64,000 nt of DNA from Mytilus californianus (GCF_021869535.1 NW_026262668.1:74028001-74092000), one strand, 5' to 3'. Counted from the stretch's first letter, positions 1,996 to 63,218 are shown. Numbers and translations are program-made. Notes: a model not told the origin generated them from the letters alone.

Positions 1996-4900
1996 TCATT
2001 CACAATCACCACCACATGCACACAAGGCAGTGCATGGGAGGGCAGACTGTCCACACTTGCAACGACCACGACATCCCCGTTTGCATCCACAGTGAATTAA
2101 CTCTTGACATGAAGATGATGCCTCTGACATATCGCTCAAAAATGGTTGCCATTGATCGCTTTTGTCTTTTATCCAGCCAAATGCATTTGGGCTAGGCAAT
2201 TGTGGTTCCAAGTTGAGACATTCACCCACCACACATCCACCTTGATAGATAGAACGTTTGGTGTGCTGGAAAAGGGCTGATTTTGTTGGTGGAATACTTT
2301 CAATGGACCTGCCTTTTTGAGCGAAAAGATGTTTTCGTGCCTCATTGAACTTCTCTGATATATTTGTTCGATCATACATCAGAATTACGAATCGTTCGAT
2401 TAATGTCATAATAGTGGTTTCGACATTCACAGTCCTTGCCTGGTCTCTCATAACGGTGAATGCTCTTGTGACATCATTAAATGCCATCCATGTATCTCAT
2501 GCTGTTTTTTTCCCTTTACCCGCGAACGATGAGACAGTGTCGCATCCAGTGAATACATGGAAGACAGGCAATGCATAAGCTTTTTCTAGTCCTAAAGTGT
2601 TAGCAAGCTCATGAATAGAAATGTATCTGAAATGTTTTCCAGTCCCAAAGGCAATCCATATTTCAGCTGCATTTGTCACATGAAAGCAAGACACAACAAT
2701 TACTACTACATCGGTATCAACTGTCCGAATCATCACTCTAGCATGTCCTTCTTTTATCGCATCTGCAATATGCACCATGATTCTGGTATCAGCTTCTTCT
2801 CGATTGCAAGATGCAAGGCCTAACGTGTCATCACGGGGAGGATTACACAAAACATGTTGTCCATCTGTAGCAATAATCTTCTTCCCGAAAATGTTCTCAT
2901 CCATCAATATATGCGACAGAAAATGAAAGAGCTCTGTTTTGATTTTATCTACACGCAAGAAGCTCTGCCAGTTTCTTGGTATGCATGTTTGCCCTTGAAC
3001 ACGTCTCCTTATTCCTGTTCCTCGCTTGCTTCTCGTAGCATTCTTTAAACTGTTATCTATGTAGGTATCCCACACTACATCAACTCTATGTACACTATCA
3101 AACTGTTTCCTATTGTATGGACAAAATATTGTCCCTGAATATTCATCAAAAGTTCGAGAGGCTCCGGGTTTTAACATATTTACAACAGCTGCACAATCAA
3201 TCACTATAGTGTCTACATTGGGTACATCTCCAGTTGATATTGTCAGTGGTTCTAAACACTTTGTAAGTAAGTCAGATTTAATTCCCTGACGAATGTTTCC
3301 ATTCAGACTCAATGCTTGTGGATGGATGTGATTTTCGTGTTCGAAGAACTCGACTAAGTTTCCTACTCTTGTTTGACATGATATATACAGTCTCGAAAAC
3401 AACGAAACTTCACTTTTCAAAACAGCAATTTTCCCTTTCGTGGTTGAAAGTGTCTTTTCTGGAGGGGTTCGAAATAATGGCAGTCCGTTTTTCTTGATAG
3501 GTTCAAAGACAGACACTGATCGGTTGATAAATCGATCTTCGATAAACTTTTCATACTGATCTTGACCAACCTTTCCTATTCGACGAACAGTGTCAACAAC
3601 TGCTGAGGGAGCTATATGTTTAGTATCTAGAACAAGCAGTTCGTTGCTGTCTTCGAGAAATGGATTTCCTAACTCGTCTATCACTTCTACCAAAGAGGTT
3701 ACATCGTGGATAAACGACCTTTGAACACTTTGCTTTTGCTCATGGTGATTTATGTCCTCTTCATCAAGAAATCGATCTATGCAGCTCTCAAACTCTTTAG
3801 CAAGTCTTGCCATTTCTGGTCCAGCAATCATCCATCTTCGGATGATCTTACTCACAGAATCTATGTACAGCTTGAAATTTCCTTCTCTGATTGCTCTAAT
3901 GAAAAGTAATGCGTCCAGTTCAAGTTTCATGGTTAAATACCAGTAATGAAAATGTGGCTTATCCAATGACATTTGCATACACCATTCCTCAAAACTTTGT
4001 ATTTCATCCAGGTTTTCCTTTTCAAGAAATTCATTGTAAGCAGCCTTAAGATGAATAAACAAACTACAAGCTGTCACTTGATGTGCACGTCGTGTTCTTG
4101 TTACATGGCTAGCTTTAAGAAACGCATCTGTTATACCAGAAGAAGCAACCTGGGCTTGCGTAATTGCACTTGTCCATCCTGAACATTCAAGCCAATCGCC
4201 GATTGTTTTGAATAAAGCCATCTCTATATGAAGTCCACCAAACATGATTAAAAATCGATCTTCGCCATACTGTTCCAGCCAATTCCATTGAATTTGTTTA
4301 GCAAGTGCGTACAGAGGCTGGTCAAAAGCTATCACTGGTGTTTGTCCTGGATTTAATGCTTGTATTGACAACATCAAAGGAGTGTTTTATCATAGCTACT
4401 GATTTCGCTTCTTCTTCAAATAGTGGTAATATAGCTGTTATGGAAGGTTCAATATCCTTAATTGGTTCCTGTTTAGCGTGGAAGGCTCCCCAAGACACAA
4501 CTGACATCTCATCAACTTGATCTTCTTGTATATCTGCTACCATTTTCAGCCATCTGCAACGAAATCAATTGGAACCTTAATATACGATAAAATTAGATTG
4601 TACATATAAGTTTGTATATACATTGTTGATTCCTGATATATTGTTAGCAAAACGTAGCTGAATGCAATTTGTTGCCTAGTGAATTTTGCATCATTATGAA
4701 AGGTTATAAAACATTAGTTGGTTCCTTTCATACAATTGCATAGAGTATCCGGGTAATTGGTAATCAATTTCTAATCTAAACTATTTCAATAAGAAGGTGT
4801 TATTGTTCAAGTATATTACTTATCTATATTCCTCCTGAACTGCTTCTTGTTGATCTTGAGTACAGCCAGTGTAAGGTCCTTCCTTCAGCGGTATCTCAGG

Positions 4901-6587
4901 AACTTTAGTCTTCAAGACAGCAGGTCTTACACTTGCAAACGATTCTGGTAACGTTTCAGTCACTTTTGTACACTGTGTTTGAAGTAGAAGCAAGTTCATT
5001 CTTTGTTCACCTTGTTCTTCACTTGTCACATGCTGAAATAATGATATCCCAGTACTGTGAAATGAGTCTTTTGCTGTAGTTGCATTTGGATTGTGGTCAA
5101 TGTTATCTACGGTAGCGGTTGTAAATAAACCTTTCTTCAGTGACGGTGGACACACAAACCCATCTTCTTGGTATTGCTTGCAAAGCTCATTGGTAATATT
5201 AGCGGATACTGAGAGCACTCTATCGTACGACACCGACAGACCTAAATGGAAAAATTTATTCACTATTCCTCGTTTTTGTGTCTGACAGTGAACCATTATC
5301 CCTAGGTACATATGTAATGGTGTTTCTCTAGATGCATGATGACGGGTCTTTGGAGAGTTACGGATTCGTTTGTAGCTGTTGAATATTAACATCTGAGCAA
5401 TCGTTAGTGTTTCCTGGGAATACGAGTCGGTTGTTATATCTTGTCCATACAACAACATACTAACAAGAGTTAAGAGAGATCTTGGAACCGAATTCTCCTG
5501 ACAGTTCACTGGAAAACTACCGTCAAACCCAGATGTAACACTAAACATGTCGCTGCGAATTATTTTTACTGCTTTATAAATCTGCATGTAGTTTGAATCA
5601 AAGTCATCATCACATGCTTTCTGAAGATCGGGTCCTATATCATCTTTGAAAGCAAGTAAACTCTCTCTCCCTTGTTTGTATTCCTGAATATCAGGGAAAT
5701 AAGCAAGAAGTCTATTCTTTGATCTTGTACTGTGAACTGCCTTCAATGTCAACACCTAGATTCCTTATTCGCCCAGAATAAACCTTTGAAAGATCTGACA
5801 TCTTGAATACTGGTGCTAAATCTTCCTCGGTTTTGGAATCTTCAATGTAGCTGATTAATTCAGCCAGTGCTATTCCATGGCTAATTCTAGTATCTCTTCC
5901 TTTTTCAGACTCATCTTCACTAGAAACTCTGGATGCCTTTCGATAAAGATTAGAAAGACATCGAACATGGTATTTCGCTTCTTGTGCAACAAGGTCCCCA
6001 GCACTGAGTTTCGCTAATAAAGCTGTGTCCTGAAGCTTCAGTGCACATTGACAAACACGGATATCAACATTACTTGTTGTTACTTCGTGGAGGTTTTCAT
6101 CTGGTTTATTCGAACCACAAAAGAAACATACATAATCTTTCATTGCTATTTTGCATGGCAAGCTGGTGCGGGTGAATTTTCGGCTCCGATTGGCTGTGTT
6201 TTCTGACATATCATATGTATCCACTTGGTGTCTTTTTTGTGCTCTCTTTAGTTCTGTTGAATTGAATTTTAAATAGCAGGTCTTATGCCATTTAGCATTG
6301 ATTTTGTACATCGTATTTTGAAGACCACTGCCATCATCTAATGCATTCAGATTTATTGTAGACGGTAGACTTTGCAGGTCTTTGAATTGTACGAGATTTT
6401 CAGCCAAAGTCACATAACCGGCACCAATATTAATACGCTTTGCCGATGTAGGACATTGCAGCAGTTCGTCTGTCATATTTTGACAAATTATACATTTAGT
6501 CCAGTCAACTTCTTCAACATTCGAGGAAGATGTTCCTGGTCTTTGATCATCTGATGTCTCAATAAGTTTAAATCTTTTAGATGTCAT
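1996..6587 (-). pseudogene. Academ-type transposase fused to XPG/FEN1-like nuclease and C-terminal CXC cysteine cluster; frameshifted
   Basis: ORF pieces 6587-5712, 5755-4820, 4543-4322, 4377-2497 and 2487-1996 read as one protein. N-terminal CxxC..HxxC zinc motifs (CIICQ..WHKTC; CFFCG..YHVRC). Transposase motifs TVDNID, AFDQPLY and FGGLHIEM. FEN/XPG-like acidic motifs VIDCAA, VVWDTY, REEADTRI, TVDTDV and FTGCDTVSSF. C-terminal CGCKRGCRGRCKC..CTALCAC. One intron at 4823-4554. Confidence 0.85.
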
Positions 6588-15842: not shown

Positions 15843-16669
15843 TTATTTTTTCCCTAAATGTCTGTTATCTTGATTGCAATTTATCTTCTGTTTTTGATTT
15901 CTAAACAAATGCCATGTTGTTGTGTTCTCTATTCGTATAAACAAGGTAAGAGTACTTCCACAAATAATGCATACACCAAGTATCCAAAACCACATACTTG
16001 GATTTATGTCTACTAACTGAACCCATATCGTACTCCATATAATGGCACAAGTGTTGCCTCCAGCACCAACCAGTCCAGCAATTACCCCTACTCTTTGCTT
16101 GTTAACATATGGAACAAGAGAATAGGTTGTTCCTTCGGAAGCTTGTACAAACACACTGCACATGGTTAATGTGGCAATGGCCGACGGAATTGAAGTCATC
16201 TGACTGAAAATGATCAGCATCACTCCCTCTCCCGCTAAAAATAATTGGTGGGCTATAAGACGACCCGGAAGTTTAATCTTTTTGAAGAATGCATCTGATA
16301 AACTTCCTCCTAAAGCACGGGCAAAGAGATTCATGAGTCCAAACAGTGATGCAATCAGACTGGCCGTATTTTGATTTAAAACACTGCAATGGAAGTCATT
16401 TCTAACAAATGTGTTAATATGACTTGCATTGCTGACTCCATTGCTGGTTCCATTGCCGATTTCAACTTCAGTCGTGGTTTCATTGCATCCTTCGATTTTA
16501 AACTTGTAAAGAAGATACAAGTTTAAAACTGTGTTTGTTGCAATTTCCACTCCAAAACACATTCCATACTGTATAAATAAAATAAAAACTGTAAAGACTG
16601 TCCATCCTGTACTCTGTCGCCTGTATTCGGAATAGACAATCTTTGAATCCTCTGGCTTTAAATATTCCT
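15843..16669 (-). CDS. NRT2: NRT2 last coding exon (central loop end, TM7-TM12, stop)
   Basis: Acceptor CATATTTTCAG|AG at 16670/16669. In phase 1 it reads EEYLKPEDSKIVYSEYRRQSTGWTVFTVFILFIQYGMCFGVE.. and runs in frame into ORF 16562-15843. Stop TAA at 15845-15843. Confidence 0.9.
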
Positions 16670-19600
16670 CTGAAAATATGGATCATAATGATATTTTTTA
16701 TTATGTAGTTAGTTCCCTTGCCAAATACTAAAGTTAAACAAACATGAGTCAGGAGCCTGTAGTTCAGTGGTTGTCGTTGGTTCATGTCTGTCAAATATTT
16801 TTAGTAAATTGTTTTGTTATAGACGAGGCTGTTAGTTTTTTCGTTTAAAAAATTGTTTCACATTTGTCATGTCGAGGCCTCTTATAGGCGACTATACGGT
16901 GTTGGTTCGATTCATTGCTGAAGACCGTACGGTGACCTATAATTGCTTATATCCACTTCATTTGCACGTTGGTGGATTGATTGTCACTCATACCAATTCG
17001 CCTTATTTTTATATATGTGATAGTATCCTATTATAATGTTTCATTGACAGTGTAGAAGAATTTCGTTTGATTAATTTTTTTTCCAATTACCGATTTAATT
17101 ATTACAAGTTATGATTAAATGTAAATAGAAGATATGAAAAAAAAATTAACGCTTACACACATAAAGAACAGATACATTTACTCTTTCTGTCAGCTCTTTA
17201 TTGGCAAAGAAATTTTATGTCCCTACTAAGGTTAATAACTCGTTCAAATAGATCTCAATAACAGGGTCCATTACAGCATTGTCAAATTGACAATTGACGG
17301 GAAAATACACAGCCACGTGTGTCTAATAGTTTCTTTTATATCTGTTATGTACAATTTATTTTAGGTTATCAGAATAAGATCTGATTTTAAACATATTTTG
17401 ATAAAAGAAGAGCATTTAAATAAGATGAATCTGTACGATTTGAAAGTTTTAGATTGTAGCCATTAGTATTTCTTTAGTACTTCGATGTCTTCAACAAGAA
17501 TTGAGCAACAATAGGTGTCTTTCCCTTATTTACCAAACAATCTACAATTTATTCCAGGACTTTCACCTAGTTACATGTTTTCTGAACACCCACCATTCAA
17601 TGAATCAAACTTATTCAAACTCAGGTAAAAAGACAAATTTGTTTAAATGGACAAACCTGCATCTTTCTTGCATGTAAATTGCCTTATGTGTTTATATGTT
17701 TATTTTCACAAATCGAGGACAGCTAAATTTTTAATATTTTTGCAAAATCCTCTAACATACAACTACCGTATTTAAAATTTAGGACTGGATGATTGCATAT
17801 CAGCTAGTAAATTTCTTTGAGCTTGATTTCAGTAACTGCAAGAATTCTTTACGGTATTCTAAAGTAAAGTTTTACTTGAACACCGAATTTAACTGCGTAT
17901 TGTTGTCTTTTAAAACGAACACACTATTTTTTCTCGTTGAAGGCCGTACGGTTGCCTATAATTGCTTACATCCACTTCATGTGAACTTAAGTGGATAGTT
18001 GTCTCATTGGCAATCATACCACATCTCCTTATTTTTTTTTTATAGAAAACCAATTTTGATCTGAATCGATCATTTTGATATAAACACTTCCTTAAGACTG
18101 AACAATAAATTAATAAGTCATTTTTAGTCTTCAGTCAATTTTTACACTTATCCACTGAGGTAAATTCATTACTGTTCAATCAATTCGTTTGCAGTTAATT
18201 AAGATCTGTTCAGTCTATGTTCAGACTGTTCAGCAAATAAGCTGATTATAGATACCAGGCTTAAATTATGTACACCAGACGCGAGTTTCGTCTACAAAAG
18301 ACTCATCAGTGACGCTCGAAACAAGATAGTTTAAAAGGCCAAATAAGGTACGACGCTTAGGAGCACAGAGGACCCACATTTCCGAAAGGTTTTGCTTAAT
18401 ACAGCTAAGGTAATATATTCTAGAAAATCCTCAGCAATGCTTTTTAAACAGTTAATTTATAATTATGACCATATCAATGATAACTCTTGTTGATAAATCA
18501 TAACTGATATTTACCTGTAAACATCAATAACATACTGAATTATCTAAAGTGCTACTGTACGTTCGTCTGAAAATTGACTGAAAGATTAAACCTGACTTAA
18601 TAATGTTTTATTCAGACTTTTCAGATGATGTTAAGATCAAAATGAGGATTTAAGACTAAAATACATTTTCTAGTAACATTATGAATTTAAGGTCTTTCCC
18701 CACTGGTTTTATATTACTATCTTTTTATCAATCTTTTTTCATTCTACTTCTACTTAATGACATTTGTACAGTGGCGCAATAAATTACATTGGCCCATTAC
18801 CAAGAGATAAACACACTCATCAAAGATACCATGCTTTTTATATTTACCTTCTCCAATTACAGCAGTATCCTGTTTTAATTTTTCAGTCAATATCCTTTTT
18901 CTCCATGGACCTTGTGGGCAGTCATCGGAAGTAAACAAAATTGAAATACCTGAAACAGAGCATTAAAAGATAAACATATTTCAGGGCCAATTGTAGCTTC
19001 TATAAAGCCGGGCAAATATTGCATTTTGAATTTATAGCATCTTTATACTTTCCTCGAAGGGTTAGTTATTATTTTATTATCAAAGTTTGGTTCCTTTGAT
19101 CTCAGTTCTTCATTGGTCAAAACTCAACTATGACGTGAAATGTTCTTGTTTCTTCTGATATTTTTAGAAATTTGAAAGAATTGTTTTTTCCGCCGGTCCG
19201 AAATCGACTTTTTATAGAATAAACTGTGTTAGTCTTTGAAGTATTTAATTAATTGACAGCCTATATAGATAAATAATGTATTATATTGTAATAAAGTTGT
19301 GTACCACAGCAACCGATCGATTTACCGTAGAATTTTGAAAACGCGCCGTATATCTCTAACTGTACCTGTTAAATAAATCTCGTATAGTAGAATATTAATT
19401 TAAATTTCCGGTATAAGAAAAAAGCATGAACATTAAAAAAAAAAGGATCGTTTCTATGACAATGTTAATAGTTCCATTTACACTTGTCATTTGTCCTCTA
19501 TTATGTTTGTCAGTCGACAAATTACTAAATATTATTCATCATTAATACAGTCTGGAATAAATCAAGTATGAGCAATTTTACTATTCTTACCTGCAATGCA

Positions 19601-20230
19601 ACAGATTAGAGCAGGTATAATAACTGATATTTTCCAAGCAAGAAATTCATCTGCCCCTGCTAACTTGACCAATTGAAATATTGCCGGCATAAATAAGAAA
19701 GTAAATCCTCCACCAAGATTTCCCCATCCACCAACAAGAGCGTTGGCGGTCCCAACAATTTTAGAGTTAAACATTATGCTGGTCCAAACCTGACAGGGGA
19801 CAAAGGCTCCTCCCAAAACACCAATAAAAAGACGTAAAACAATTAGTCCTGTCCCATTTTTTATTAACCCTGCAAGAGCCATGGGAATCGACCCTGTTAA
19901 CAGTATAGCAGACATGATTCTTCGTGGTCCAAATTTATCACAAAGTGGTCCAACAATGATTCGTAAACCAATGGTAGCAGCTACGCTCGCTATACCGGAG
20001 TTCGCAACATCTTTTTTGGAAAGTTTGAGTTCCTTCATTATTGTCGGTATAAGTGGCTGTATACCAAACCACGATGTAAAAGCTAGAAAAAAACAAAACC
20101 AAGAGGTATGGAAGGCCCGCATGTACGGTCGTCTGATGCTAAAAAGTTGAAACTGTTTAGCCCTACCATTTTCGTCTTTTTTAATTTCTTTAGCATGCAG
20201 TTTTTCCAGGAATCGACAACAGTATGACAT
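15843..20230 (-). CDS. NRT2: NRT2/NNP-family high-affinity nitrate/nitrite transporter (MFS), 3 coding exons, 522 aa
   Basis: Spliced CDS 20230-19591 + 18949-18848 + 16669-15843 = 640+102+827 = 1569 nt with no stops; both introns are GT-AG, phase 1. NRT2 hallmarks: RPYMRAFHTSWFCFFLAFTSWF; first substrate Arg in GLRIIVGPLCDKFGPR; FVPCQVWTS; nitrate signature 1 GGWGNLGGG; DDCPQG; QYGMCFGVE; second Arg in FGLMNLFARALGG; VQASEG; signature 2 GLVGAGGN. An acceptor TTTTTTTTAG at 20237 implies an unseen upstream UTR exon. Confidence 0.92.
16745..17010 (-). repeat. Interspersed repeat family 'R1' (AGATGTGGTATGATTGCCAATGAGACAAC head), intronic copy
   Basis: Reverse-complement match to the copies at 51472, 57503 and 63219. 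Another short minus copy lies at ~17930-18035. Confidence 0.6.
18848..18949 (-). CDS. NRT2: NRT2 middle coding exon (end of TM6 and DDCPQG loop)
   Basis: Acceptor CTCTGTTTCAG|GT and donor GAAG|GTAAAT. 102 nt, phase 1/1, encoding GISILFTSDDCPQGPWRKRILTEKLKQDTAVIGE; D-x-P-x-G is the conserved NRT2 post-TM6 motif. Confidence 0.88.
19591..20230 (-). CDS. NRT2: NRT2 first coding exon (TM1-TM6)
   Basis: ORF 20230-19562 up to the donor GCAG|GTAAGA at 19591/19590. Contains signature 1 and the first conserved Arg. Confidence 0.95.
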
Positions 20231-22863
20231 CTTTGTCTAAAAAAAACCCATCGTTGGTAATTAGTAATTCATTACTTCATATAATAATTCATTATCTATC
20301 TTTCTTCTTATTGAAATTTTACGTTCGGGTGAACAATAGAGTTTTTGATATATTGTTATCAGTTAATACACTGAAATGAGAAAAAAATTCAGGAAAAGGA
20401 TCTTCATCTTATTTAGAATGAACTGTCATTAATGTGAATCTTACAACGAACAATAATCTTCCGTAGACTTTCTAACTTGATAAAATATCGATATTTCCAA
20501 ATAAATTAAAAGAAAAACATGAGAAAAAAGAAAAGAAAAACTAAACTTTTGATTATTATATTTTGTACACTATACTTTTTTTTCTATATATTTACAAAAA
20601 TATAAACAAAATGTTTGAAATATAGATATATAATATATCTCTAACTCCCTGATGTAATATACATACGTACCAATTGATTTAATAATGAATTTCAATTTCC
20701 TTTTTTGGTACTAGTTTTCAAGATTATGCAATATTACGAAGAAAGAGACACGTTGAAAACTGAAAAAAAACTGAAGGCAAGCTTCTTTTGTTTTACATTA
20801 AATAATGCTTTAGGTGAAATTAACCTTTTCAAATAATGTGGGACACATTTACATAAGTATGTTTCTGAGCATGTCCAGAAATTAAATATACATTGTAATA
20901 GACCATATCAATTAAGCATATTTCTAGGCATTTATAACAACATATGCATATCATGTGTACGTAAATTATGTCACGTGTTGAATGTCTTTCATACCAATAG
21001 AAAAATTTCGAAATTTTATTCTACCTTTTAAAATGCTTATGATTAAAACCAATTGTTCAGAGAAAAATTGAAGATCTTTCCACCTACGAATCCACACTCG
21101 TTAATCATCATGATTTTGAAAATAGTTATGCAAACAATTCATTTTGTGAGAAAAAAAAATAGTGTAAAAATATCTGCGGTCTTAAAGTCACCCAAAATTG
21201 AAACAAATTAATTTTGGTCAGATTAGGGTTTAGGTTCAGTTTAAACGCACGTAGATAGTGGTAACTGGCTTTAATCAGACTGAAATTAAAATAATATAAT
21301 TTTGATAATGAATTTTTCTCTCAATTTCAGAAAATGATAATGAAATGTTAATAAGGCTCATAAAGGTTCATAGAACATCCCTACCTCACAAAATACCATA
21401 GACAATGATGATTTCAGACACATTATATATGAGGACAGTGAGAAGCCCAACCGATTCAACAAATACTTTAGTTTGAATTCCAAACTCGAGATTAATTATT
21501 TTCTATTCAAGAGTTTGAAGTAAAAACTAATATTAATATCCAAAATATATACATAAATCAAAATTAAATATTCGACATTATTAGATTAAATCATTAGGAC
21601 CAGATTGATTAATCACAGAATGCTGAAAATATGCCCCGAGAAAGGGGAGGTTTCTATACAAATTAAATTAAAAAATCTCGTCTAGAATGGAGGTATTAAT
21701 CTAGCTTGAAGATTGCAAATATCATTGATGTGGTATTAAATGTATTCTAATGTACGGAACTTTCAGTCTTGTTTGACATGCCACTTTCTGTGCTTTTTTT
21801 CCAATCTTTTTCTTGACCTCCATTATTTCAACAGTAACAGCATTGTAAAGATTGAAAAGCATTGACTGAATATTTCATAAGTTATCTAGGACCTTGATAA
21901 CTGCTGAACGGCAAAAGTGAAAATCGTCTTTATCGATCTTGACCTCCATTTTGTCATCAGTAACAACATATTAAAATTTAAAAAGCGTTGGTTGAACGGT
22001 TCCTAAGTAGTTGCACGGAAATTGTTGGCTGTCGCCTGTTTTTAAATATGTATTAAATGGACTAAATCTTCTCCATATGGAAAAGCTCATCTACGAATAT
22101 TAGTCTGGCTTTTGGCCAAAATATTCAACGGTGCATCAGCTATCTGGGGATACATGGAAACGAATGTCATTAATAAATGTATGATGTAAAGTATTGATAA
22201 ACTGTTATTCTTTATATTAGAATTGAACGAAATAGCTGGAAACAAGTGGTAGTCAATATATATAGTCATTAGTCTGAATAGCATGGGTAGACTTCTGGAA
22301 AAACTCGTTTTTTTCTTTATAAAAAGGGGATACAGGGGAAACAACTGGAAGCAGTGCTATTTCTTTAAACAAGGAATTTTAAATTGAGAAAAAATTATCT
22401 TCGCTTATCTGCTTAGGAAAATTTACATTCTCCAGACAGAATTCGCAAATAGTCCCCATGAACATAATATATCTGTTCAGAACTCGTTCTTGTTATCTTA
22501 CTTAGTTTCTTATTGGACTGTTATCGTGAGCAGCTTGGCTGGTGTCAAAATTGAGCAGAAATCGGGAATCAATCTTTTAAATCTAACTTTGTCTGTAGTT
22601 TTTTTGGGGTGAATGTTTGCCTCTCGTTATCCCCTAACTTTCTAAAAACAGTGCAGAGATAAAATCCTTATCTATGTCCATAATTTATAATTCCTTGTTC
22701 ATTTTAGGCACAAATATAATGAAAAATAATCATTTATATCATAATTCCATCTTTTGACGTTTATCGTTTTTATCTTTGAGGAAAAACAATTGATATTCAG
22801 CTAAATTAGAGAACGCGATTCATAATAAAACTTAGCTCGAAAAGTTAGTTGTGTCCTTTAATC

Positions 22864-25800: not shown

Positions 25801-27540
25801 AATGTTTGTTTTATTGTGATGAAGATATGATACATGTCTTTAAAAGTAAACGTACCCAGAAACCATATATTTTTTAATCGGCATCCATAAACCTATCATT
25901 TGAGACCGAAAGTCATCTTCCAAAAACCTAAAGTAGCAAATTATCTCCCTTATTGCAGGCAAAAGTGTAAAGAAACCACATATTTTTAGAATCAGTGTAA
26001 AAAGAAACTATCATGAGAGACCGAAAGTGACATTTCTAAACCGGAAGTTGGAAAGTATCTCCCTTATTTCAGGCAAAAGTATAAAGAAACCATATATTTT
26101 TTTAATCAGAATAAAGAAACCTATGATTGGACACGAATAGTAACTTTGAGGAAACCGGAAATAGCTTCTTATCAATTATATAGAAATTAAATGTGGAAAG
26201 ACCTTCTTGGATTTTAATTTTTTTTTTCTTCTTCCGCCACTTTTTTTTTCTTGCATGTATTTTTTGTTTTGCAAGAAATTGGTTAGATGTTTGGTATATG
26301 GTATCGTACGGTTAATGCTCCTTTGAAACTCACCCAGTTTAACCAACACATTTCGTTGTAAGAGTAATCTCCCCAAACACTGTTTTACTTGTTCTTACAT
26401 CTCCTCTGTAACAAAAAAGAATCTTTTTCGTTACATCCTCAGAAAGTTTCGACTGAAGCGATCCACTTACGTCTGATAGGAGTTATCTACCCTTCACAAT
26501 TTGTCGGTCTGTTTTTGTTACTCATAAACTGTAAGCCGTATAGACCTAGGGATTTATATTTGAGGTCCGTGGGTCCTAACTTGCAAAATTAGATAAAGAT
26601 CAAAGGTCAAGGTCATGTTCTAAATTTTGAATTTTGTTTGTTCTGGCATCTGCTCTGAAACTTTTAAAACTATATAAAAGAACTGGTGCAAAATGTTTGT
26701 TTTATTGTGATATGATACATTTGGTCTGTAACAATAAAATGACATCTAATAGGAGTTATTGCCCCTGAAATGTTTTATTTAAGGTTAATTGATTATTACT
26801 TCAATATAGAACATGATAAACCCATGGAGTCTTTTGCAAAATGTTGATTGACATATGACTGAGTCACTGACCTTGAAAAATGTCAACCGGCATTCATTAA
26901 CCTATCATTTGAGATCGAAAGTGACCTTCTAAAAACTGGAAGTAGCAAATTATCTCTATTACAGGCAAAAGTAAATAGAAACCATATATTTTGGATCAGT
27001 GTAAATACAGTTTCCATATGAGACCAAAAGTGACATTTTCTAAACAGGCAGTTGGCAATTATCTCATTTATTTCAGGCAAAGTATATAGAAACCATATAT
27101 TTCTGGAATCATTGTGAATAAAGCTATAATATGAGACCGGAAGTGACCTTGTCTAAACTGGAAGTTGGAAATTATCTCCCTTATTTCAGACAAAAGTATA
27201 TAGAAACCATAAATTTTTCGAATTAGTATGAAGAAACCTATGATTTGACGCCAAAGGTATCTTTAAGTTAACCGGAAATTGGTTCCTATCAAGGTCAAGG
27301 TCAAATTTTGACTTTTATTTGTTCCTGCATCACCTCTGAAACTTTTGAAGATATGTATGAAAGATCTAGTGAAAAAGGTTTGTTTTATTGTGATGGAGAT
27401 ATGATACATTTGATCTGAAACAATCCAATGACATCTTATAGATTATTTCCCCTCAAATGTTTTAATTTAAGGTTAATTGATTATTACTTCCATATTGAAC
27501 ATTATAAAAGCCACAGAATCTTGGCTATATTTTAATTGGC
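22864..27540. repeat. Compound, hierarchically repetitive element cluster (hairpin trio, ~0.9-1 kb blocks, ~112-bp internal tandem units)
   Basis: Block markers GAAACTCA(C/T)CC(T/A)GTTTAACC recur at ~23135, 25388 and 26326; (A/G)GTCATGTTCTAAATTTT at ~23365, 25710 and 26610. Units of about 110-113 bp (GAAACCATATATTT..GAGACCGGAAGTGAC..ATCTCCCTTATTTCAGGCAAAAGT) occur at 25860-26160 and 26900-27280, with inverted copies near 24150-24340 and 24960-25200. Confidence 0.7.
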
Positions 27541-30876: not shown

Positions 30877-31164
30877 ACAAAGATATCGTTCTTTTGTCGA
30901 TTCATGTGAAAACTACATGCTAAAGCTATTTCAAAAGACGAAATGGTAGGGCTAAACAGTTAATGCAACATTTTAGCATTAGACGACTGTGCATGCGGGC
31001 CTTCCATACCTCTTGGTTTTGTTTTTTTCCAAGCCTTTAATTCGTGGTTTGGTATACAGCCACTTATGCCAACAATAATGAGGGAACTCAAACGTTCAAA
31101 CAGAGATGTTGCGAACTCAGGTATAGCTAGCATAGCTGCTACCATTGGTTTATGTATCATTTTT
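30877..31164 (+). pseudogene. NRT2 pseudogene fragment B (5' part of first coding exon)
   Basis: Homologous to the reverse complement of 20236-19950. Acceptor retained, ATG changed to ATA, early TGA, frameshifts. Truncated after IGLCIIF by a ~410-bp deletion relative to fragment C. Confidence 0.93.
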
Positions 31165-41109: not shown

Positions 41110-41755
41110 ACAAAGATGTCGTTCTTTTGTCGATTCATGTAAAAACTAAATGCTAAAGAAATTTAAAAAGACGAAATGGTAGGGCTAAACAGTTTCAACT
41201 TTTTAGCATTAGACGACTGTACATGCGGGCCTTCCATACCTCTTGGTTTTGTTTTTTTCCAAGCCTTTAAATCGTGGTTTGGTATACAGCCACTTATGCC
41301 AACAATAATGAGGGAACTCAAACTTTCAAACAGAGATGTTGCGAACTCTGGTATAGCTAGCATAGCTGCTACCATTGGTTTATGTATCATTTTTGGACCA
41401 CTTTGTGATAAATTTGGACCAAGCTAAATCATGTCTTCTTTACTGTTTACAGGGTCTATAACCATGGCTCTTACAGAGTTAATAAAACAAGGGGCAGTAC
41501 TTATTGTTTTACGTCCTTTTACTGGTGTTCTTGGAGGAGCCTATGTCCCCTGTCAGTTTTGAACCAGCATAATGTTCAACTCTAAAATTGTTGGAACCGC
41601 CAACTCCCTTTTTGGTAGATGGGAAAATCTTGGTGAAGGATTTACTTTCCTGCTAATGCCGGCTATATTTCAATTGGTCAAGTTGGCAGGGGAAGATGAA
41701 TTTCTTGCTTGGAAAATAGCAGTTATAATACCTGCTCTAATCTGTTGAATTGCAG
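41110..41755 (+). pseudogene. NRT2 pseudogene fragment C (complete first coding exon)
   Basis: Full-length homolog of exon 20236-19591 (roughly 85-90% identity by eye), with intact TTTCAG acceptor and GCAG|GTAAGA donor and flanking intron homology. TAA at codon 9, further stops and frameshifts; GLRII changed to GLCII and GGWGNLGGG to GRWENLGEG. Confidence 0.95.
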
Positions 41756-44570
41756 GTAAGACTAATTGAATTGCTTATACTTGATGAACTCTAGTCTGTA
41801 GTCATAATGAAAAATAGGTAGTAAATTTTCAATTGGCAAAACCCCCTTCAATCACAATATAGGATATATAATAATGACAAATGTAAATAGAATTATCAAT
41901 ACAATAAAAAAGGAAAAGAAGAACAATGAGCATAACCCATACAGCATAGCAGGCTATAAAAGCCCCGACATAACAAGTGTACAACAATTTAAACGGGAAA
42001 ACTAACGGCCTGATTTGTGTTCAAATGTATCTTATTTTTTACCGATGTCCGTTTGTTTGGTGTAAATTTTATGAGTTTTCCTATGCTGCTCGCAAAGAAA
42101 AGCATCTTTCATCATTCAAGTTGTTTCATGTTTTAACATTCTTTTAGTTTGATAAATATATGTAGAGGCGGATTGAAGCGACGAGAAAAAAAATGTGCGA
42201 TTTTGCATATTTTGTCAGTTTCAATTCTTAAAAGTAATATTTGTCTGACAAAACGGCATTAACTCAGATCTATTTTGGTCAAAACTATATGTTTTACTAC
42301 TGATCGTAACGTTGTTCTCTTTCTAACATGTACCCAAATAGATAAAGTGAAAGAATGGAAAATTTGACGCCTTTATGATACTGTTGATTCATTTATCTTC
42401 GTGGGTATCAGTTTTCATGGATAGAGAAAAAAAAAGACATTTCGAAGGATACGGAAATTTGTGGATCGCTGTTTCAAAAAATTAAAAAAAAAGTTTCAAA
42501 TACGTAAATTTGTGGATCTCTGTTTGAATAATAATAAACTAATAAACAAAAGTTAGAAATTCATTGAAAGTGTTTTGAATTGTCAAAATCCTCGATTGGT
42601 CATTCGAGGATAAAGTGTTCATTTAAAACTTCGATTACAAGGGTGGACAAAGGCTACTAATTATTTCTTTATTTTACAATTTAAAATTTCTTGTCGGAAT
42701 TTTATAAGGTATTTGAAGCCCTTTGATGTGCAACTGATTGAAAGTTGTTTTCCCTAATCACGACATTAAACGCGGTCATTAGAAAACTATCAAATTAAGA
42801 AACAGCCGTATGATGTTTGCAGCCCAAGCTGGAACCCAAGTCATAAAACAATGATACAATTTACTCATCTCGCGGTTATGTTATATATACTCATTGGAAC
42901 AGGTAAACGGCTGTTTTAATTATAAATTTTTAAGTTACATGTCGGATATAGTTAATTCACTTTTCATATTGGTGAACGATTTTGAAATTAAAATTTTATC
43001 TGTATTATGTTTGATATGTACCGTTAAATGTCTCCCAAGGATTATAATCGAATCGATTACAAGTGTACATCACGCTGGGTTCATGTGCAAGTAAATTATA
43101 ATTCTGATAAAATGTTGTTTTTGTCCAGATAAAAAAAAAACATGCTTGAATGACAATAAAGCGAATTATTGTATGAAAAGCAATTTGTGTCCTCCGATCT
43201 CCTTGTTTTAACATTTTGGTTGAGTAAAATTTTATTTCGAAAAATGTCGTTTTTGTCCAGAATAAACAAAAATACATGCTTAAACGAAAATAAATCGGAA
43301 TATTATTTGAAAAGCAATTTGTGTCCTGCATTCTCCTTTTAAAATTTTGTTACGAAAACATGTCGTTTTCTCCAGAACTATTAAAATTAAAGTAAACAAA
43401 AATGTTTCAACGACAATTTATCGAAATTTTATTTGAAAAGCAATGTGTATCCTACTTGAACTACCTAATTAAAAGTTTGTTGATAAAAAAATTTCAGTCA
43501 AAGGTGTGAAAATAAATGTTCCTGTCATAAAAAATATGACCTACAGGCAATATCCCGTACTTAATCCTATTGATATTTAATCACCATTAAACCAATTATG
43601 TCACGGTAATTGGGCACAGATGTGCAATTCATTTCAGGTAGGCGGTAATGGTAGCCTTTTCTCAATTCCTCTGCTCATATCGTAATCTTGGATATGTATG
43701 ATGACTTGTTTCGAAGCTGAGACATTTTCACATATGTGGTTAAATTTTCGGGGTACGAAGTGAGATTCGTTTTTCCGTAAATTAGCACACCCCGAAAATC
43801 CTTTCGTGATGCGGCTCCTCGAGGTAAAAATCCCTTTTTTCACACAACAACTTCTTTGAAAATTCAGTTCTTTGCATACTCCATAGTGTTTACACATTTA
43901 TTATATGGTCCTCTGCTCTCCAAATCAGTACGAATGGCTAAGCTCAGTCACTTGTTAAAAATTGAAACATGTCCAATATCACTACACAGAGATTTTTTGT
44001 GTTCCTCAATTTGAGACGCATTAGGGATATTGACCCATATTGGAATCCATAGTTCTGATTTTTCCAAATATTCTTATGTGATCTTCTTTGGTATGACTTT
44101 CTGAATAAATCTGTGTATTGTTGTCCATTTCTGAAAGAAAATAAAGTTGTTTCAGCACTATAAGGCATTGACTCTTTTATCGCTCTATTTATTTATTCTG
44201 AATACAATGTGTTAGTATAATCGATTTCTTTCAGTATACCTTCACAGGTCACAATATGGATGAAACATCTGTGAAACATCTGATGACAACCTTCAATTAC
44301 AATATACAGACCCTGTTAAAGCATTTAGTAAAATTTTCTGATGTCTAAAAGGGCATTTTGACTGAGAAATTATGCAAAAATGTAGATTTTATCAAAAACC
44401 CTAATAAATACTTAATAATTTTTACCACTTGAAATCTGGTATTTTCAACCTTATAAACCACTCTAAACTGCTGTGAATGTCATACTTATCATATAATTAA
44501 AAGCGCAATGAAGTGCAAATTTTCAAAACTTGTCCTCTCCATAAGTCTATTTAAAAAAAGTATTTTTTTA

Positions 44571-54455: not shown

Positions 54456-54708
54456 ACACATCGTATTCTGATAGCCTAAAATAGTATAATCAGAAAAAAA
54501 AACTATTTTCCCGTCAACGTTAATTATACCTTAATTGACACTGTAATTGAGATCCAATTTTGTACGAGTAATTTACCCTATGAGGGACATAGAATTTCAT
54601 TGACAATGTAGAATTAGCGGAAAGAGTTAATTTATCTGTTCGTATTCATGCATTAGCAACCTTTAGGTTTTTATCAGATTTTTCAATAACATTTATCTTT
54701 TGTTAAGC

Positions 54709-55123
54709 TTTGGAGTGGAAATTGCTACGAACACAGTTTTTAACTTGTATATTCTATATACGTTTAAAATTGAAGGATGCAATGAAACCAAGACTGAAAT
54801 TAAAATAAGCAATGGAGTCAGCAATGGCGTCAGCAATGCAAGCCAGATTGACACATTTGATAGAAATGACTTTTAAATAAAAATACAACCAGTTTGATTA
54901 CATCATTGTTACCAATTATGTTTAGCGGGTGAGGGAGTGATGCTGATAATTCTCAGCCAGATGACATCAATTCCTTCGGCCATTGTCACATTAATCATGT
55001 GTAGTGTGCTTGTACAAGCTTCCGAAGGAACAACATATTCTCTTGTTCCCTATGTTAACAACCAAAGCGTAGGGGTAATTGCTGGACTGGTTGGTGCTGG
55101 AGTCAACACTGGTGTCATTATAT
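54709..55123 (+). pseudogene. NRT2 pseudogene fragment D (internal part of last exon)
   Basis: FGVEIATNTV.NLY..KIEGCNETK..SNGVSNGVSNAS..; TM8-9 largely deleted; then GEGVMLIILSQMTSIPSAI..VQASEGTTYSLVPYVN..GLVGAGVNTG. The exon 5' end and the C-terminus are missing. Confidence 0.93.
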
Positions 55124-57502
55124 ATGAGCTTGTTTTGCTATATGATATAAAAACAAAATTGACGAAAAAAGGTCATTTACATAAAATCGTAAAATGCAAA
55201 AAATACATTTTGCAAATAAAACATTTGACATAAAAGTTCATAATTGATATGAAATTATAATACATAATTGATACGAAATTACATCAAGTAAAATCATATT
55301 AATTGAATAAATGACAAAGAATAGCAAAGGTGGGGAGAAAAATCTGCCACAAATCCACTTTTAGATTGAAAAAGTGGATCTATTCTGACTTAGATCAGAG
55401 TAAGTGCCAGCTTGACAATTTTTATTTATTCTTATAAGTACTTTGACAAATGAAGATAAAATGGATGCATTCGACAGATATGATTTATATACGTGTATTA
55501 TTTGCGTTGCAACAAATGCAGTCACAAAATGTTTATATAGAAAAGAGATTATAGTTATTTTGTGCAGTTTTAAAACAAAGTTCACTAGTGGAGTAGGAAC
55601 TGCTGACTTATCTTGGACACCTGAGTTCAATCGCGATTTTTTGTGAGGTTTTTGTTGCTCAATCTATGTGTTTGGTGGACTGTTTTTTCCGTTTGAATTT
55701 TTGGTCATAGTTGTATCTAATTTTCTTCGACTGATGATTTTTGATTGGCCCCTTTGTATCTTCTCCCTCGTTTAAATAATTAAGAAGCTACTCGGAATAA
55801 TACGCAGCTCGTCGGCAATGTCTTAGTCTTCAATCATCAGGTTTTAAGAAAATGCGTATTCTTTAGGAACAGTCATCAAAATTTTGAATGTGTTTGAAAT
55901 GTTTGAAATTTTAAAAGGGTTTCCTTTGATCTTTTAAGACACATACCTTTCAAACATTCTATTTAAATTACTTTGAAGGTAATATTTTTAAGGTAACAGT
56001 TGTGTTGCAGTCCATCAGAATTACATGCCCTTTTCAAACGTAATTTCCTTGTAGAAATTTGTGCCAGATATAAATTTATAGATCATGTAGAGGTCGTCTT
56101 AAACTTGCCGAGAGGTGATAATTGTTGCTCAATGTTTAAGTGCACATTGCTGTTAAATAAACACATATTGATGCTGACGTTAAAATTAGATACAAATCAT
56201 ATAACTAGACAGAGAATACGAAAAAATAAGTAAAATACCATTATCAAAAAATATTTTTCCGCTAACCGAGTCTCTGTGACTTGACCTATTTATTACATGC
56301 CTGATCTAGTAAGTGTATAAATATAAATCAGGACGTTAATTTCCTCGTTTTAATTGTCATTTCGGGGCCTTTTATAGCTTATTATGTGGTATTGGTTTTG
56401 CTCATTGTTGAAGGCTGTACAGTGACCTATTGTTGTTATCTTTCTATGTAATTTTGTTTCTGATGGAGAGTTGTCTGATTGGCATTCATACCACATTTTC
56501 TTATTTTTATATAACGTCATTATTGATATCTCGTTCTTTTTTTTATAAATAATTAAACTTTCTCTAAGTTCACAATACAATTGTAAGTGATGTTTTCAAA
56601 CTTTATTAATATTTTAAATTTCCACTTGTACATTTGTCTATATTGCCGAATATTATTTCCTTTATAGGGCCATCGTAAAAAGCGAGGTTCATATTCTCTA
56701 TTGTAAAATCAATTCATTTGTCAATTGTAATTTTGCGAATATAGTTTTTATTTCAGTTATTAATGGATACATCTTTTTACAGTTCTAAGACAAATGAGTT
56801 TGTGTTTCAAGGTACTGTTTGCAGAAATAGCAGTTACCTTGAACCAAGGAATGCTCAAATTGATGTAGTCAAGATTCGGTGTAAATAATGATATGTATGG
56901 ACTTCAATTTGTGTTCACACATTATAATTTGTATATCTAGATTTCTTAAATTACTCTCAAACCGAGTTCCAAACAATACTTAGAGCAAAATCAGTTTCCC
57001 TTTTTAAATGTGCCTTCCGTATGGTATTTTGATTAAGTGCTTGTTGAATATCTTTTTGTTTTAATTTTTGGTTATGTTATCGTAATACCTGAAATTATGT
57101 ACAGATCTAATTTGTTTAATGTAATTATAAAATTTGACCTGCTAACTCGTGAAAATGTTAATACCCCCTAGTATATCTATATATATTTTATGTAGTTCAT
57201 AAAATCTAGTTTTTAGTATTATTTTCTTATTAACCTAGATGTAGATTATGTTATATATCATAACAGATTTATTAGTATGTCAGCTTTAAAAATGTCTAAA
57301 TAGACAGCCTTCATTACTTAGAAGATGTAATATACTTTAAACTGGCTATAGTTCATACTAAAGTGTTATACTTTATAAATGTTTAAAAAAACAAAAACAT
57401 TAAAATATAGAATTAAACCCCATGGTTAAAAGAGTTGACATGACCCAAGATTCATAAAACTAGTCTTTATAATACATTTTATCTTAAAAGAGTATAAATA
57501 AA

Positions 57503-60796: not shown

Positions 60797-61148
60797 TTTG
60801 GAGTGGAAATTGCGACGATTACAGTTTTAAACGTGTATCTTCTATATACGTTTAAAATTGAAGGATGCAATGAAACCAAGACTGAAGTTAAAATTAGCAA
60901 TGGAGTCAGCAATGGAGTCAGCAATGCAAGCCAGATTGACACATTTGATAGAAATGAGGGAGTGATGCTGATAATTCTCAGCCAGATTACATCAATTCCA
61001 TCGGCCATTGTCACATTAATCATGTGTAGTGTGCTTGTACAAGCTTCCGAAGGAACAACATATTCTCTTGTTCCCTATGTTAACAAGCAAAGCCTAGCGG
61101 TAATTACTGGACTGGTTGGTGCTGGAGCCAACACTGGTGTCATTATAT
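60797..61148 (+). pseudogene. NRT2 pseudogene fragment E (last exon, larger in-frame deletion)
   Basis: ORF 60788-61186: FGVEIATITVLNVY..DTFDRNE|GVMLIILSQ..VQASEG..GLVGAGANTG, with TM8-9 deleted. Confidence 0.93.
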
Positions 61149-63218
61149 ATGAGCTTGTTTTGCTATATGATATAAAACAAAATTGACGAAAAAAGGTCAT
61201 TTACATAAAATCGTAAAATGCAAAAAATACATTTTGCAAATAAAACATTTGACATAAAAGTTCATAATTGATATGAAATTATAATACATAATTGATACGA
61301 AATTACATCAAGTAAAATCATATTTTTTGATAATTTTTATTTATTCTTATATGTACTTTGACAAATGAAGATAAAATGAATGCATTCGACATATATAATT
61401 TATATACGTGTATTATTTGCGTTGCAACAAATACAGTCACAAAATGTTTATATAGAAAAGAAAGAGAAAATATTTTTTTTTTGCAGTTTTGAAACGAATT
61501 TCACTAGTGGAGTAGGAACTTCTGACTTATCTCGGACACCTGAGTTCAATCGCGATTTTTTGTGAGGTTTTTGTTTCTCAATCTATGTGTGTTGTGGTAT
61601 TATTTTTAAGGTAACCGTTGTGTTGCAGTCAATCAGAATTACATGCCCTTTTCAGACGTAATTTCCTTGTAGAAATTTGTGCCAGATATAAAATTATCAT
61701 TCATTGTGTTACCAAGCCTGTATATGTGGTGTTCAATGCGCAAATTAACGTGATCGACATAGAGCATAGTATTTTGCTCAAATCTGTGCTAGAAGTCGTC
61801 TTTAACTTGCCGTGAGGTGATAATTGTTGCTCAATGTTTAAGTGCACATTGTTTTTAAATATACAAATATTGGTGCTGACGTTAAAATTAGATAGAAATC
61901 ATATAACTAGACAGAAAATACGAAAAATAAGTAAAATACCATTATTAAAAAATATTTTTCCACTGTGACTTGACCTATTTATTACATACCTATTCTAGTA
62001 AGTGTATAAGTATAAATCAGGACGTTAGTTGCCTCGTTTTAATTGTTATTTCTTTTATAGCTTATCATGCGGTATGGGATTTGCTCATTGTTGAAGGCTG
62101 TACAGTGACCTTTTGTTGTTTACTTCTATGTAATTTTGTTTCTGATGGAGAGTTGTCTCATTGGCAATCATATCACATTTTCTTATTTTTATATAACGTC
62201 ATTATTGATATCTCGTTCTTTTTTTTTATAAATAATTAAACTTTCTCTAGGTTCACAATACAATTGTAAGTGATGTTTTCAAACTTAATTAATTTTTTTT
62301 AAATTTCCACATTGTCCATTTGTCTATATTGCCGAATATTATTTCCTTTCTAGGGCCGTCGTATTAAGCGAGGTTCATATTCTCTATTGTAAAACCAATT
62401 CATTTGTCAATTGTACTTTTGCGAATATAGTTTTTATTTCAGTTATTAATGGTTACATCTTTTTACAGTTCTAAAACAGATGAGTTTGTGTTTCAAGGTA
62501 CTGTTTGCAGACATAGCAGTTACCTTGAACCAAGGAATGCTCAAACTGATGTAGTCAAGATTCGGTGTAAATAATATTATGTATGGACGTCAATTGGAAT
62601 TCACACATTATAATTTGTATATCAAGATTTCTTAAATTACCCTCAAACCGAGTTCCAGACAATACTTAGAGCAAAATCAGTTTCCTTTTTTAAATGTGCC
62701 TTCGGTATGGTATTTTGATTAAGTGCTTGTTGAATATCTTTCGGTTTTAATTTTAGGTTATGTTATCGTAATACCTGAAATTATGTACAGATCTTATTTG
62801 TTTAATGTAATTGAAAAATTGACCTGCTAATTCGTTAAAATGTTAATACCCCCTTAGTACATCTATATATATTTTAGGTATTACAAAAAATTCTAGTTTT
62901 CAGTATTGTTTTCTTCGTACAAGGTGTATATTTTTTTCTTATTTACCTAGATGTAGGTAATATAATATGTGACAAGAGATTTATTAGGCTGTCAGATTTT
63001 AATCGCCAGAAAAATGTCTAAATAGACAGCCTTCATTACTTTAGAGCATGTAATATGCTTTAAACTGGCTATAGTTCATACTAAAGTGTTATACTGTATT
63101 AATGTTTAAAAAACAAAAACATTAAAATATAGAATGAAACCCCATGGTTAAAAGAGTGAACCAAGATTCATAAAACTATTCTTTATGACACATTTTATCT
63201 TAAAAGAGAATAAATATA

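Follow-up and report, generated by a model that had tools for sequence, protein, structure and literature searches.

The Mytilus californianus DNA analyzed here, a 64,000-nt stretch referred to below as the window (GCF_021869535.1, NW_026262668.1:74028001-74092000), very probably contains a genuine chromosomal mussel gene that is orthologous to genes of M. coruscus and M. galloprovincialis and encodes a 12-transmembrane (TM) transporter of the NRT2 branch, with nitrate/nitrite transport as the activity indicated by homology. An earlier note on this DNA had described an intact, intron-bearing gene for a protein of 522 amino acids. We recovered exactly this gene by splicing three minus-strand exons at the coordinates given there (20230-19591, 18949-18848 and 16669-15843), which produced a 1569-nt ORF of 522 codons plus a stop; both introns begin with GT and end with AG.

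Exon 1 (19591..20230, minus strand; 640 nt) starts with an ATG at 20230, encodes residues 1-213 plus the first base of codon 214, and covers the predicted TM1-TM6, the arginine R90 and nitrate signature 1 (NS1). It is followed by intron 1 (18950..19590, minus strand; phase 1), in which a high-copy repeat lies at 18981-19141. Exon 2 (18848..18949, minus strand; 102 nt) encodes the end of TM6, an SDDCPQG motif and the first part of the central cytoplasmic loop. Intron 2 (16670..18847, minus strand; phase 1) contains host interspersed repeats at 16727-17048 and 17854-18500. Exon 3 (15843..16669, minus strand) comprises 827 nt including the stop at 15843-15845, and covers the predicted TM7-TM12, a Cys-bracketed loop with glycosylation sequons, R365 and nitrate signature 2 (NS2). 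No other intact long ORF was found in the 64-kb window, and the absence of NR, NiR and NAR2 genes holds to that extent.

The predicted product of this locus is a 12-TM major-facilitator (MFS) protein that falls in the eukaryotic NRT2 branch of the NNP family (nitrate/nitrite porters, TC 2.A.1.8). Exon 1 matched the NarK/NNP model TIGR00886 with 189 bits (E = 1.3e-55) and exon 3 matched it with 83.5 bits; in Pfam, exon 1 matched MFS_1 with 65 bits and there was no match for exon 2 or exon 3 alone. Both models were those named beforehand as a check on the NNP/NRT2 identity, which they support. The whole-protein TIGR00886 score and the structure model are those of the M. galloprovincialis ortholog (P0151, 88% identical), not of the window protein itself. 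P0151 reached 303.9 bits (E = 1.6e-90), compared with 64.6 bits for the second-ranking family; it falls 8 bits short of the curated cut-off of 311.7, a threshold that the orthologs of mytilid clade A narrowly fail to reach and that the paralog P0153 exceeds (312.6).

Hydropathy revealed about 12 hydrophobic segments in the spliced protein, consistent with 12 TMs, and the AlphaFold (AF2) model of P0151 is an all-helical MFS structure (pLDDT 83.8). When this model was compared with the Swiss-Prot AlphaFold library, the top 16 matches were all NRT2, NrtA and NrtP nitrate transporters (E from 3e-27 to 2e-19, TM-score 0.70-0.77). Searches of the PDB were less informative: exon 1 and exon 3 found no match there by sequence, a profile of 24 sequences reached NarK only at E = 0.007, ranked after SLC37A4 and SV2A, and Foldseek with the P0151 model returned generic MFS transporters, with no NRT2 or NarK structure among the top matches. 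Solved structures therefore do not discriminate the family, whereas the Swiss-Prot AlphaFold library did.

The window protein keeps 85 of the 86 highly conserved columns in a family alignment of 24 sequences. R90 (TM2) and R365 (TM8), the two substrate arginines reported for it, are both present and occupy columns that are invariant in the 24 relatives. NS1 reads GGWGNLGGG (residues 167-175, TM5), the same as the family consensus. The best structural matches, A. nidulans NrtA (CrnA, P22152) and the plant and Chlamydomonas NRT2 proteins (TM-score about 0.75, 27-33% identity), share with it the two arginines, NS1, the 12-TM fold and, save for its last glycine, NS2. The central loop, however, is shorter than in fungal NrtA, and the 46-residue TM7-TM8 loop, which is predicted to be extracellular and carries two conserved cysteines bracketing it and three N-x-S/T sequons, is absent from the aligned fungal and diatom sequences. 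NarK serves respiratory metabolism by exchanging nitrate and nitrite. E. coli NarK and NarU (PDB 4JR9, 4U4T) belong to the same NNP model, TIGR00886, but their sequence similarity to the window protein is marginal. Sialin (SLC17A5), the described mammalian nitrate carrier, has the MFS fold in common, and its structures were among the generic PDB matches; nevertheless, it belongs to another MFS family, lacks the NNP signatures and is no specific relative.

The caution that NRT2-like genes might already be annotated in marine invertebrates proved justified. In M. galloprovincialis, the ortholog P0151 is named 'MFS transporter, NNP family, nitrate/nitrite transporter' (88% aa identity), and in M. 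coruscus/edulis the name is 'NRT', the M. coruscus protein (P0161, contig CACVKT020001589.1) being 94.5% identical. The first 64 residues are missing from the M. coruscus annotation but are encoded in the genome. The Mytilus orthologs share the three-exon structure, exon lengths, splice phases, collinear flanks and a downstream pseudogene copy; in M. coruscus, the exons measure the same 640, 102 and 827 nt and the ortholog is intact, with 522 amino acids.

Animals were long thought to be devoid of NRT2 (PMC6400420). A recent preprint described animal NRT2 in bivalves, annelids and rotifers, reporting a phylogeny, the conservation of the arginines and NS motifs, and expression in Tridacna tissues, with function deduced from conservation alone; its main text names no Mytilus, and Bathymodiolus is the only mussel (bioRxiv 10.1101/2025.11.20.689417). 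The giant clam proteins TriNRT2.1 and TriNRT2.2 from that study belong to the same family and to the same bivalve-plus-annelid clade as the window protein, and they too have an MFS_1 domain, 12 TMs and the two arginines; the NS motifs are also common to both, save for the last NS2 glycine of the window copy. They come, however, from a heteroconch and are linked to photosymbiosis, with expression in gill and outer mantle that goes down on bleaching, while the window gene comes from a pteriomorph mussel. Our search for literature on nitrate transporters and Mytilus found no dedicated study. Since the Mytilus annotations and the giant-clam preprint have already overturned the view of animals without NRT2, the window does not open this question; its gene is a further member of a known oddity, and its novelty is low. 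What it adds is a clean model of the gene in a mussel without photosymbionts, together with evidence of purifying selection, an intron shared across bivalves and a local history of duplication and decay.

Transcript evidence was considered separately for the two splice junctions. RNA contig 7 of run X1 joins exon 2 (18848-18946) to exon 1 (19588-20236), so that the 19591/18949 junction, one of two for which RNA support had been proposed as a check, was recovered directly. For the other one, 18848/16669, there is no joined contig, and the support consists of contig ends that fall exactly on the predicted borders: X1 contig 2 stops exactly at 16669 and continues with 30 letters that do not match the intron. 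In the 3' direction, X1 contig 1 reaches 15732, in the 3' UTR. The depth of X1 is about 6 over the exons and 0 over unique intron sequence, with intron 1 at about 0 outside its repeat. Words from exon 1 are present in at least 14 RNA-type runs, and spliced NRT2 transcripts were found in related mussels. In X21, the sole RNA run from the same species, almost no reads fell on the exons; given that only 6% of this run was read, such a result speaks neither for nor against expression in M. californianus. Run X3 was guessed to be RNA, but it spans the exon-intron borders unspliced and covers the introns; it was therefore treated as DNA-like and rejected as transcript evidence.

By homology to characterised NRT2 proteins, namely A. 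nidulans NrtA and those of plants and Chlamydomonas, the mussel protein would be placed in the membrane with both termini in the cytoplasm and the TM7-TM8 loop facing outside. Nitrate (or nitrite) would bind in a central cavity between TM2-R90 and TM8-R365, lined by the glycine-rich helices of NS1 (TM5) and NS2 (TM11), and would then be moved by alternating access of the rocker-switch type, with proton-coupled uptake as the most likely mode. The most economical reading of its role would be epithelial uptake or redistribution of nitrate/nitrite, as proposed for giant clams. Nitrite excretion, NO-cycle buffering and the supply of symbionts or microbiota, suggested in the earlier note, are candidate roles.

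A different function is possible, if rather unlikely: the protein may not be mainly an uptake symporter, and may instead move nitrite or nitrate in the handling of NO metabolites, or exchange nitrate and nitrite as NarK does. Animals are without an assimilatory pathway (PMC6400420; bioRxiv 10.1101/2025.11.20.689417), the NNP family includes nitrate/nitrite antiporters and nitrite exporters, and NarK-type proteins are among the structural matches; nonetheless, the closest characterised relatives, both by sequence and by model, are eukaryotic NRT2/NrtA uptake systems (27-33% identity), whereas bacterial NarK-type proteins are just 18-19% identical and barely detectable by sequence (E = 0.007). 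The NIT-domain guanylate cyclases of invertebrates, proposed as nitrate/nitrite sensors (PMC7400543), also fit the handling of NO metabolites, which could consist in export, in organellar transport or in feeding pathways that sense nitrate or nitrite.

We tentatively suggest that non-symbiotic mussels might keep NRT2 under purifying selection for their own nitrate/nitrite physiology, as an ancestral lophotrochozoan function and not a co-option for photosymbiosis. Such host physiology could either supply or drain an inorganic-nitrogen or NO-metabolite pathway; possible partners would be NIT-domain guanylate cyclases or the microbiota of gill and gut. Should mussel NRT2 prove to transport nitrate, the handling of nitrate in bivalves would be a host trait and not a microbial one alone, with consequences for coastal nitrogen cycling and for the physiology of hypoxia and NO.

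The earlier note had listed both nitrate signatures as present. NS1 is indeed intact, but NS2 (TM11) departs from the family motif at its last glycine, reading GAGGNTC in the window in place of GAGGNxG, with the rest of the motif preserved. Cys455 stands where 24 of 24 relatives have Gly. Its codon (16047..16049, minus strand) is TGT in the window and GGT in other runs, the underlying change being A>C on the plus strand at 16049, and Gly is found in every contig from runs X1, X3 and X18. The same contigs all have Asn at the nearly invariant position 460, where the window has Ser (16033), and the M. coruscus and M. galloprovincialis orthologs likewise have Gly455 and Asn460. Cys455 and Ser460 may represent an allele or an assembly error; as all other contigs have Gly455 and Asn460, the canonical form is that of the species in general. 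According to literature cited in the giant-clam preprint (bioRxiv 10.1101/2025.11.20.689417), the signature-motif glycines of NrtA are functionally important, so the window haplotype might be impaired, or else the two bases may be assembly errors. A natural Gly/Cys difference at an invariant signature glycine could also serve as a built-in functional control.

Four NRT2 pseudogene fragments, all on the plus strand, lie downstream of the gene. One corresponds to exon 1 (41116..41757; 70% aa identity), and has five in-frame stops inside the exon-1 match, a Cys in place of the TM2 Arg and a degraded NS1. A truncated one, interrupted by stops, covers the first 92 codons of exon 1 (30883..31161). 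The remaining two derive from parts of exon 3: the first (54703..55161; 55% aa identity) contains stops and has lost the TM8 region and the end of the C-terminus, and the second (60797..61174; 53% aa identity) has a deletion of the TM8/Arg region. An orthologous copy of the fragment at 54703..55161 is present on the M. coruscus contig. As pseudogene fragments are common to both species, they must be old, and the intact gene persisted in the meantime.

These fragments, together with the Cys455 and Ser460 changes that are private to the window, raise the question of whether the assembly copy is itself a decaying or non-functional allele, with the NRT2 family being lost in mussels and the last intact copy damaged in NS2. 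We consider this improbable. The 522-aa ORF is intact, with the exon structure of M. coruscus and all but one of the conserved columns kept, related mussels produce spliced transcripts, all other contigs have the canonical residues, and the neighboring fragments are old, while the intact gene persisted. The near absence of reads in X21 would be in line with decay, but that run was read only to 6%. Divergence from M. coruscus bears on both sides. With an overall dN/dS of 0.36, the gene is under purifying selection, which is strong in the N-terminal half (0.09) and goes against decay, while the value of the C-terminal half (0.56) could be taken in its favor. The fast evolution of the C-terminal half also counts against the preferred reading of the locus.

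A persisting mussel gene, the reading preferred here, is also what the phylogeny indicates. In a quick maximum-likelihood tree of 61 proteins with SH-aLRT support, the gene is nested within the bivalves: the Mytilus clade received a support of 100, the bivalve clade 99, and the grouping of bivalves with the annelid Owenia as sister 99. Mytilids have two old paralog clades, A and B. The position and phase of intron 1 are common to both of them and to Mercenaria, as seen in the M. californianus paralog (L002) and in the Mercenaria locus (L003), which argues for an old residence in animal genomes. The gene has thus resided in bivalve genomes for a long time. Between the two origins left open before, ancient retention or lateral transfer, an old, intron-bearing animal gene is upheld and a recent transfer is not.

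Recent transfer into mussels from an alga, fungus or protist is very improbable: NRT2 occurs patchily among animals, and horizontal transfer of the nitrate assimilation pathway among eukaryotes is documented (PMC6400420), but the bivalve sequences form a single clade whose sister group is an annelid one, both in our tree and in the preprint (bioRxiv 10.1101/2025.11.20.689417), the two mytilid paralog clades are old, intron 1 is common to mytilids and a heteroconch clam, and the base composition of the gene is within the range of the window, with no sign of an outlier. The tree and the shared intron 1 led us to reject it. Any lateral transfer would have been earlier than the diversification of bivalves.

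Over more than 30 kb, the locus aligns collinearly with contig L001 of an independent M. coruscus assembly at about 90% identity, with introns and flanks at 89-92% and exons at 96-98%. The host-type repeats reported in the introns were confirmed, as the segments 16727-17048, 17854-18500 and 18981-19141 reach 1e5 to 3.5e6 in word depth in X18, a DNA run from the same species, the highest value being reached in intron 2, and recur 2-10 times within the window. The flanking ORFs resemble animal TEs, although they had no match in Pfam. An algal or protist contaminant misassembled into the animal genome, with nothing in its favor but the unexpected gene family, has a negligible probability, being ruled out by the M. 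coruscus collinearity and the million-fold depth of the intron repeats in mussel DNA, and opposed further by the TE-like flanks and by paralogs on chromosomes of 82-281 Mb in other bivalves. Along with the spliced RNA, the bivalve clade and the shared intron, these data confirm the earlier claim of genomic integration. Within the collinear region, M. coruscus has a much longer intron 2 than the window.

The NRT2-type gene of the mussel window is real and was correctly read by the earlier note, yet it is already known in kind. Three GT/AG-bounded exons on the minus strand (20230-19591, 18949-18848 and 16669-15843) splice into an ORF of 1569 nt, that is, 522 codons plus a stop, and the introns have GT donors, AG acceptors and polypyrimidine tracts. 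Exon 1 alone scored 189 bits against TIGR00886 (NCBIfam, NarK family nitrate/nitrite MFS transporter) and 65 bits against Pfam MFS_1, and exon 3 scored 83.5 bits against the C-terminal third of TIGR00886, so that the complete 522-aa NNP/NRT2 protein with canonical introns was borne out. The hydrophobic segments of the spliced protein are compatible with 12 TMs, and both claimed substrate arginines were found (R90 in TM2 and R365 in TM8). In an alignment with 24 relatives, which include bivalve, fungal, oomycete and diatom sequences, 85 of the 86 highly conserved columns were matched. The claim that both nitrate signatures are present holds in part: NS1 (GGWGNLGGG, 167-175) is intact, but NS2, site of the sole mismatched column, reads GAGGNTC, with Cys455 instead of the Gly found in 24/24 relatives.

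At positions 16049 (codon 455, 16047-16049) and 16033 (codon 460), every contig from X1 (an RNA-seq run labelled mollusc metagenome), X3 (a run that behaves DNA-like) and X18 (same-species DNA) has the canonical base. The orthologs and the contigs of these three runs have Gly at 455, and codon 460, read on the minus strand, gives Ser in the window and Asn in contigs and orthologs. Because the contigs agree on the canonical bases, the Cys455/Ser460 deviation is either private to the assembled haplotype or an assembly error; the window allele may be real, since rare variants can be lost from Logan contigs. Ser460 and Cys455 are two private non-synonymous differences placed 16 bases apart in TM11/NS2, at a near-invariant and an invariant position, respectively.

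Contamination by a foreign sequence can be excluded for practical purposes, and the gene is genomically integrated, as had been proposed. The intron segments 16727-17048, 17854-18500 and 18981-19141 are high-copy host repeats, since their word depths in X18 range from 1e5 to 3.5e6 and further copies of them occur elsewhere in the window. Flanking ORFs are similar to repeated hypothetical proteins of animal genomes, a flanking type-2 DNA polymerase B fragment is of a kind found in animal mobile elements, and GC is uniform (about 0.30-0.34) over the gene and its surroundings.

Evidence of splicing came from X1, whose contig 7 (733 nt) joins 18848-18946 straight to 19588-20236, that is, exon 2 to exon 1. 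This contig stops exactly at 18848, and contig 2 stops exactly at 16669, the predicted start of exon 3, with 30 further letters that are not intron. Of the two junctions proposed for RNA support, 19591/18949 is thus joined, whereas 18848/16669 is based on exact contig ends and conservation, without a joined read. Depth in X1 was about 6 over the exons and 0 over unique intron sequence. X1 is 2-5% divergent from the window and therefore represents either another, related mussel or an allele that has diverged. Exon 1 words were present in at least 14 RNA-type runs, which bear several different mussel labels; the sole same-species RNA run (X21, 6% sampled) gave almost no signal over the exons.

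Exon 1 was compared by phmmer with 1.84 billion representatives, and the best full-length match then served as query for a named search; the nearest proteins are those of mussels. By BLASTP, the spliced protein has 94.5% identity to 'NRT [Mytilus coruscus]', 88% to 'MFS transporter, NNP family, nitrate/nitrite transporter [Mytilus galloprovincialis]' and 87-97% to 'NRT [Mytilus edulis]', so that Mytilus orthologs already bear nitrate-transporter names in public records, as the earlier note had anticipated. Paralogs of M. trossulus, M. californianus, Mercenaria, Sinanodonta, Potamilus and Pinctada follow at 53-58%, the annelid Owenia at 39-46% and Corallochytrium at about 41%. No protein from the gene's own genome was among the protein-database matches of the named search, and therefore this copy seems to be unannotated there. 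The M. coruscus contig CACVKT020001589.1 (L001) is collinear with the window over >30 kb, with 96-98% identity in exons against 89-92% in introns and flanks, and encodes an intact 522-aa ortholog with identical splice sites and exon lengths (640/102/827). The window accordingly stems from a Mytilus-like mussel other than M. coruscus. The public M. coruscus 'NRT' starts at Met65 and lacks the first 64 residues; this annotation is truncated, since the genome encodes the full N-terminus at L001 9809-10000, starting where the window gene starts.

In an ML tree of 61 proteins (supports as SH-aLRT), the window protein groups with M. coruscus and M. galloprovincialis (100), nested in a bivalve clade (99) to which Owenia is sister (99), with two old paralog clades in mytilids; this phylogeny, a check suggested beforehand, agrees in topology with that of a giant-clam preprint (bioRxiv 10.1101/2025.11.20.689417). 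Gene models were rebuilt exactly for the M. californianus clade-B paralog, one Mercenaria gene and one Owenia gene. In both mytilid clades and in Mercenaria, intron 1 interrupts one and the same glycine codon, in phase 1, 7 residues before S/TDDCPQG, and the gene has therefore resided in bivalve genomes from a time before pteriomorphs and heteroconchs separated. The first intron of Owenia differs, and a phase-1 intron lies within the variable central loop in 4/4 genes. Against M. coruscus, dS is 0.066, dN 0.023 and dN/dS 0.36 (0.09 for codons 1-213, 0.56 for the remainder).

For the 88% ortholog, AlphaFold gave a model with a canonical MFS fold (pLDDT 83.8, pTM 0.83). The 16 Swiss-Prot structures that match this model best belong without exception to nitrate transporters, namely NRT2 of rice, Arabidopsis and Chlamydomonas, NrtA of A. 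nidulans and NrtP of cyanobacteria. Its matches in the PDB are generic MFS proteins, and sequence searches hardly reach NarK. By homology, nitrate or nitrite would bind in a cavity lined by NS1 and NS2, with R90 and R365 on either side, and be moved by alternating access, probably with proton coupling. Direction, coupling, substrate preference, membrane and partner requirement of the window protein are points that we infer. The predicted extracellular TM7-TM8 loop (46 residues, 302-347; 16330-16470, minus strand) has two cysteines and three N-x-S/T N-glycosylation sequons, and in the mussel is partly made of three imperfect 12-bp repeats. The cysteine pair is conserved in bivalves, Owenia, Corallochytrium and the labyrinthulid Hondaea, whereas the aligned fungal and diatom sequences lack it.

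Animals were treated as being without the pathway by Ocana-Pallares et al. (PMC6400420). The preprint reports NRT2 homologs in molluscs, annelids and rotifers and describes in them the conserved arginines and NS motifs considered here. Tridacna NRT2 is expressed in gill and outer mantle and down-regulated on bleaching, and nitrate supply to symbionts was proposed for it (bioRxiv 10.1101/2025.11.20.689417). The main text of that preprint does not name Mytilus, its sole mussel being Bathymodiolus, and our literature search found no dedicated paper on a mussel nitrate transporter. What the present gene still adds is a host without symbionts, evidence on selection and introns, a cluster of pseudogenes and the Gly455Cys difference. 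Since NIT-domain guanylate cyclases are described in invertebrates (PMC7400543), mussel NRT2 may have a part in nitrate/nitrite signalling.

Four decayed NRT2 fragments cluster on the plus strand, with stops, deletions and loss of the TM2/TM8 arginines: a 92-codon stub of exon 1 (30883-31161), an exon-1 copy (41116-41757) with five in-frame stops inside the match, TM2 Arg changed to Cys and a degraded NS1, and two exon-3 pieces without TM8 region and C-terminus (54703-55161 and 60797-61174). The spacing of the repeat pairs 32445/43093, 34732/45601 and 54808/60896, which delimit duplicated units about 10.6-10.9 kb and about 6.1 kb long, indicates an origin by local segmental duplications. At least the fragment copy at 54-56 kb is also present on L001, and the duplications therefore predate the split from M. 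coruscus. As previously stated, none of the long ORFs of the 64-kb window stands out as a candidate for NR, NiR or NAR2.

Four contiguous long ORFs at 1996-6587 (minus strand; 163, 626, 311 and 291 aa), ending in a Cys-rich CXC-like tail, had no Pfam match; the atlas clusters closest to them consist of repeated hypothetical proteins from arthropods, cnidarians and molluscs, of which some have TCR/CXC or DUF6589 domains, and the four ORFs probably represent a large, recently active mobile element. A 273-aa ORF at 49755-50576 (plus strand) is similar to the type-2 DNA polymerase B of organelles and viruses (PF03175-type clusters); a Polinton/Maverick-like element is the likely source of this fragment. 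Tandem arrays of a 113-114-bp repeat occur three times (25858-26165, 26902-27248 and 35188-35534), with related copies on L001, and resemble a satellite or a MITE-associated repeat of mussels.
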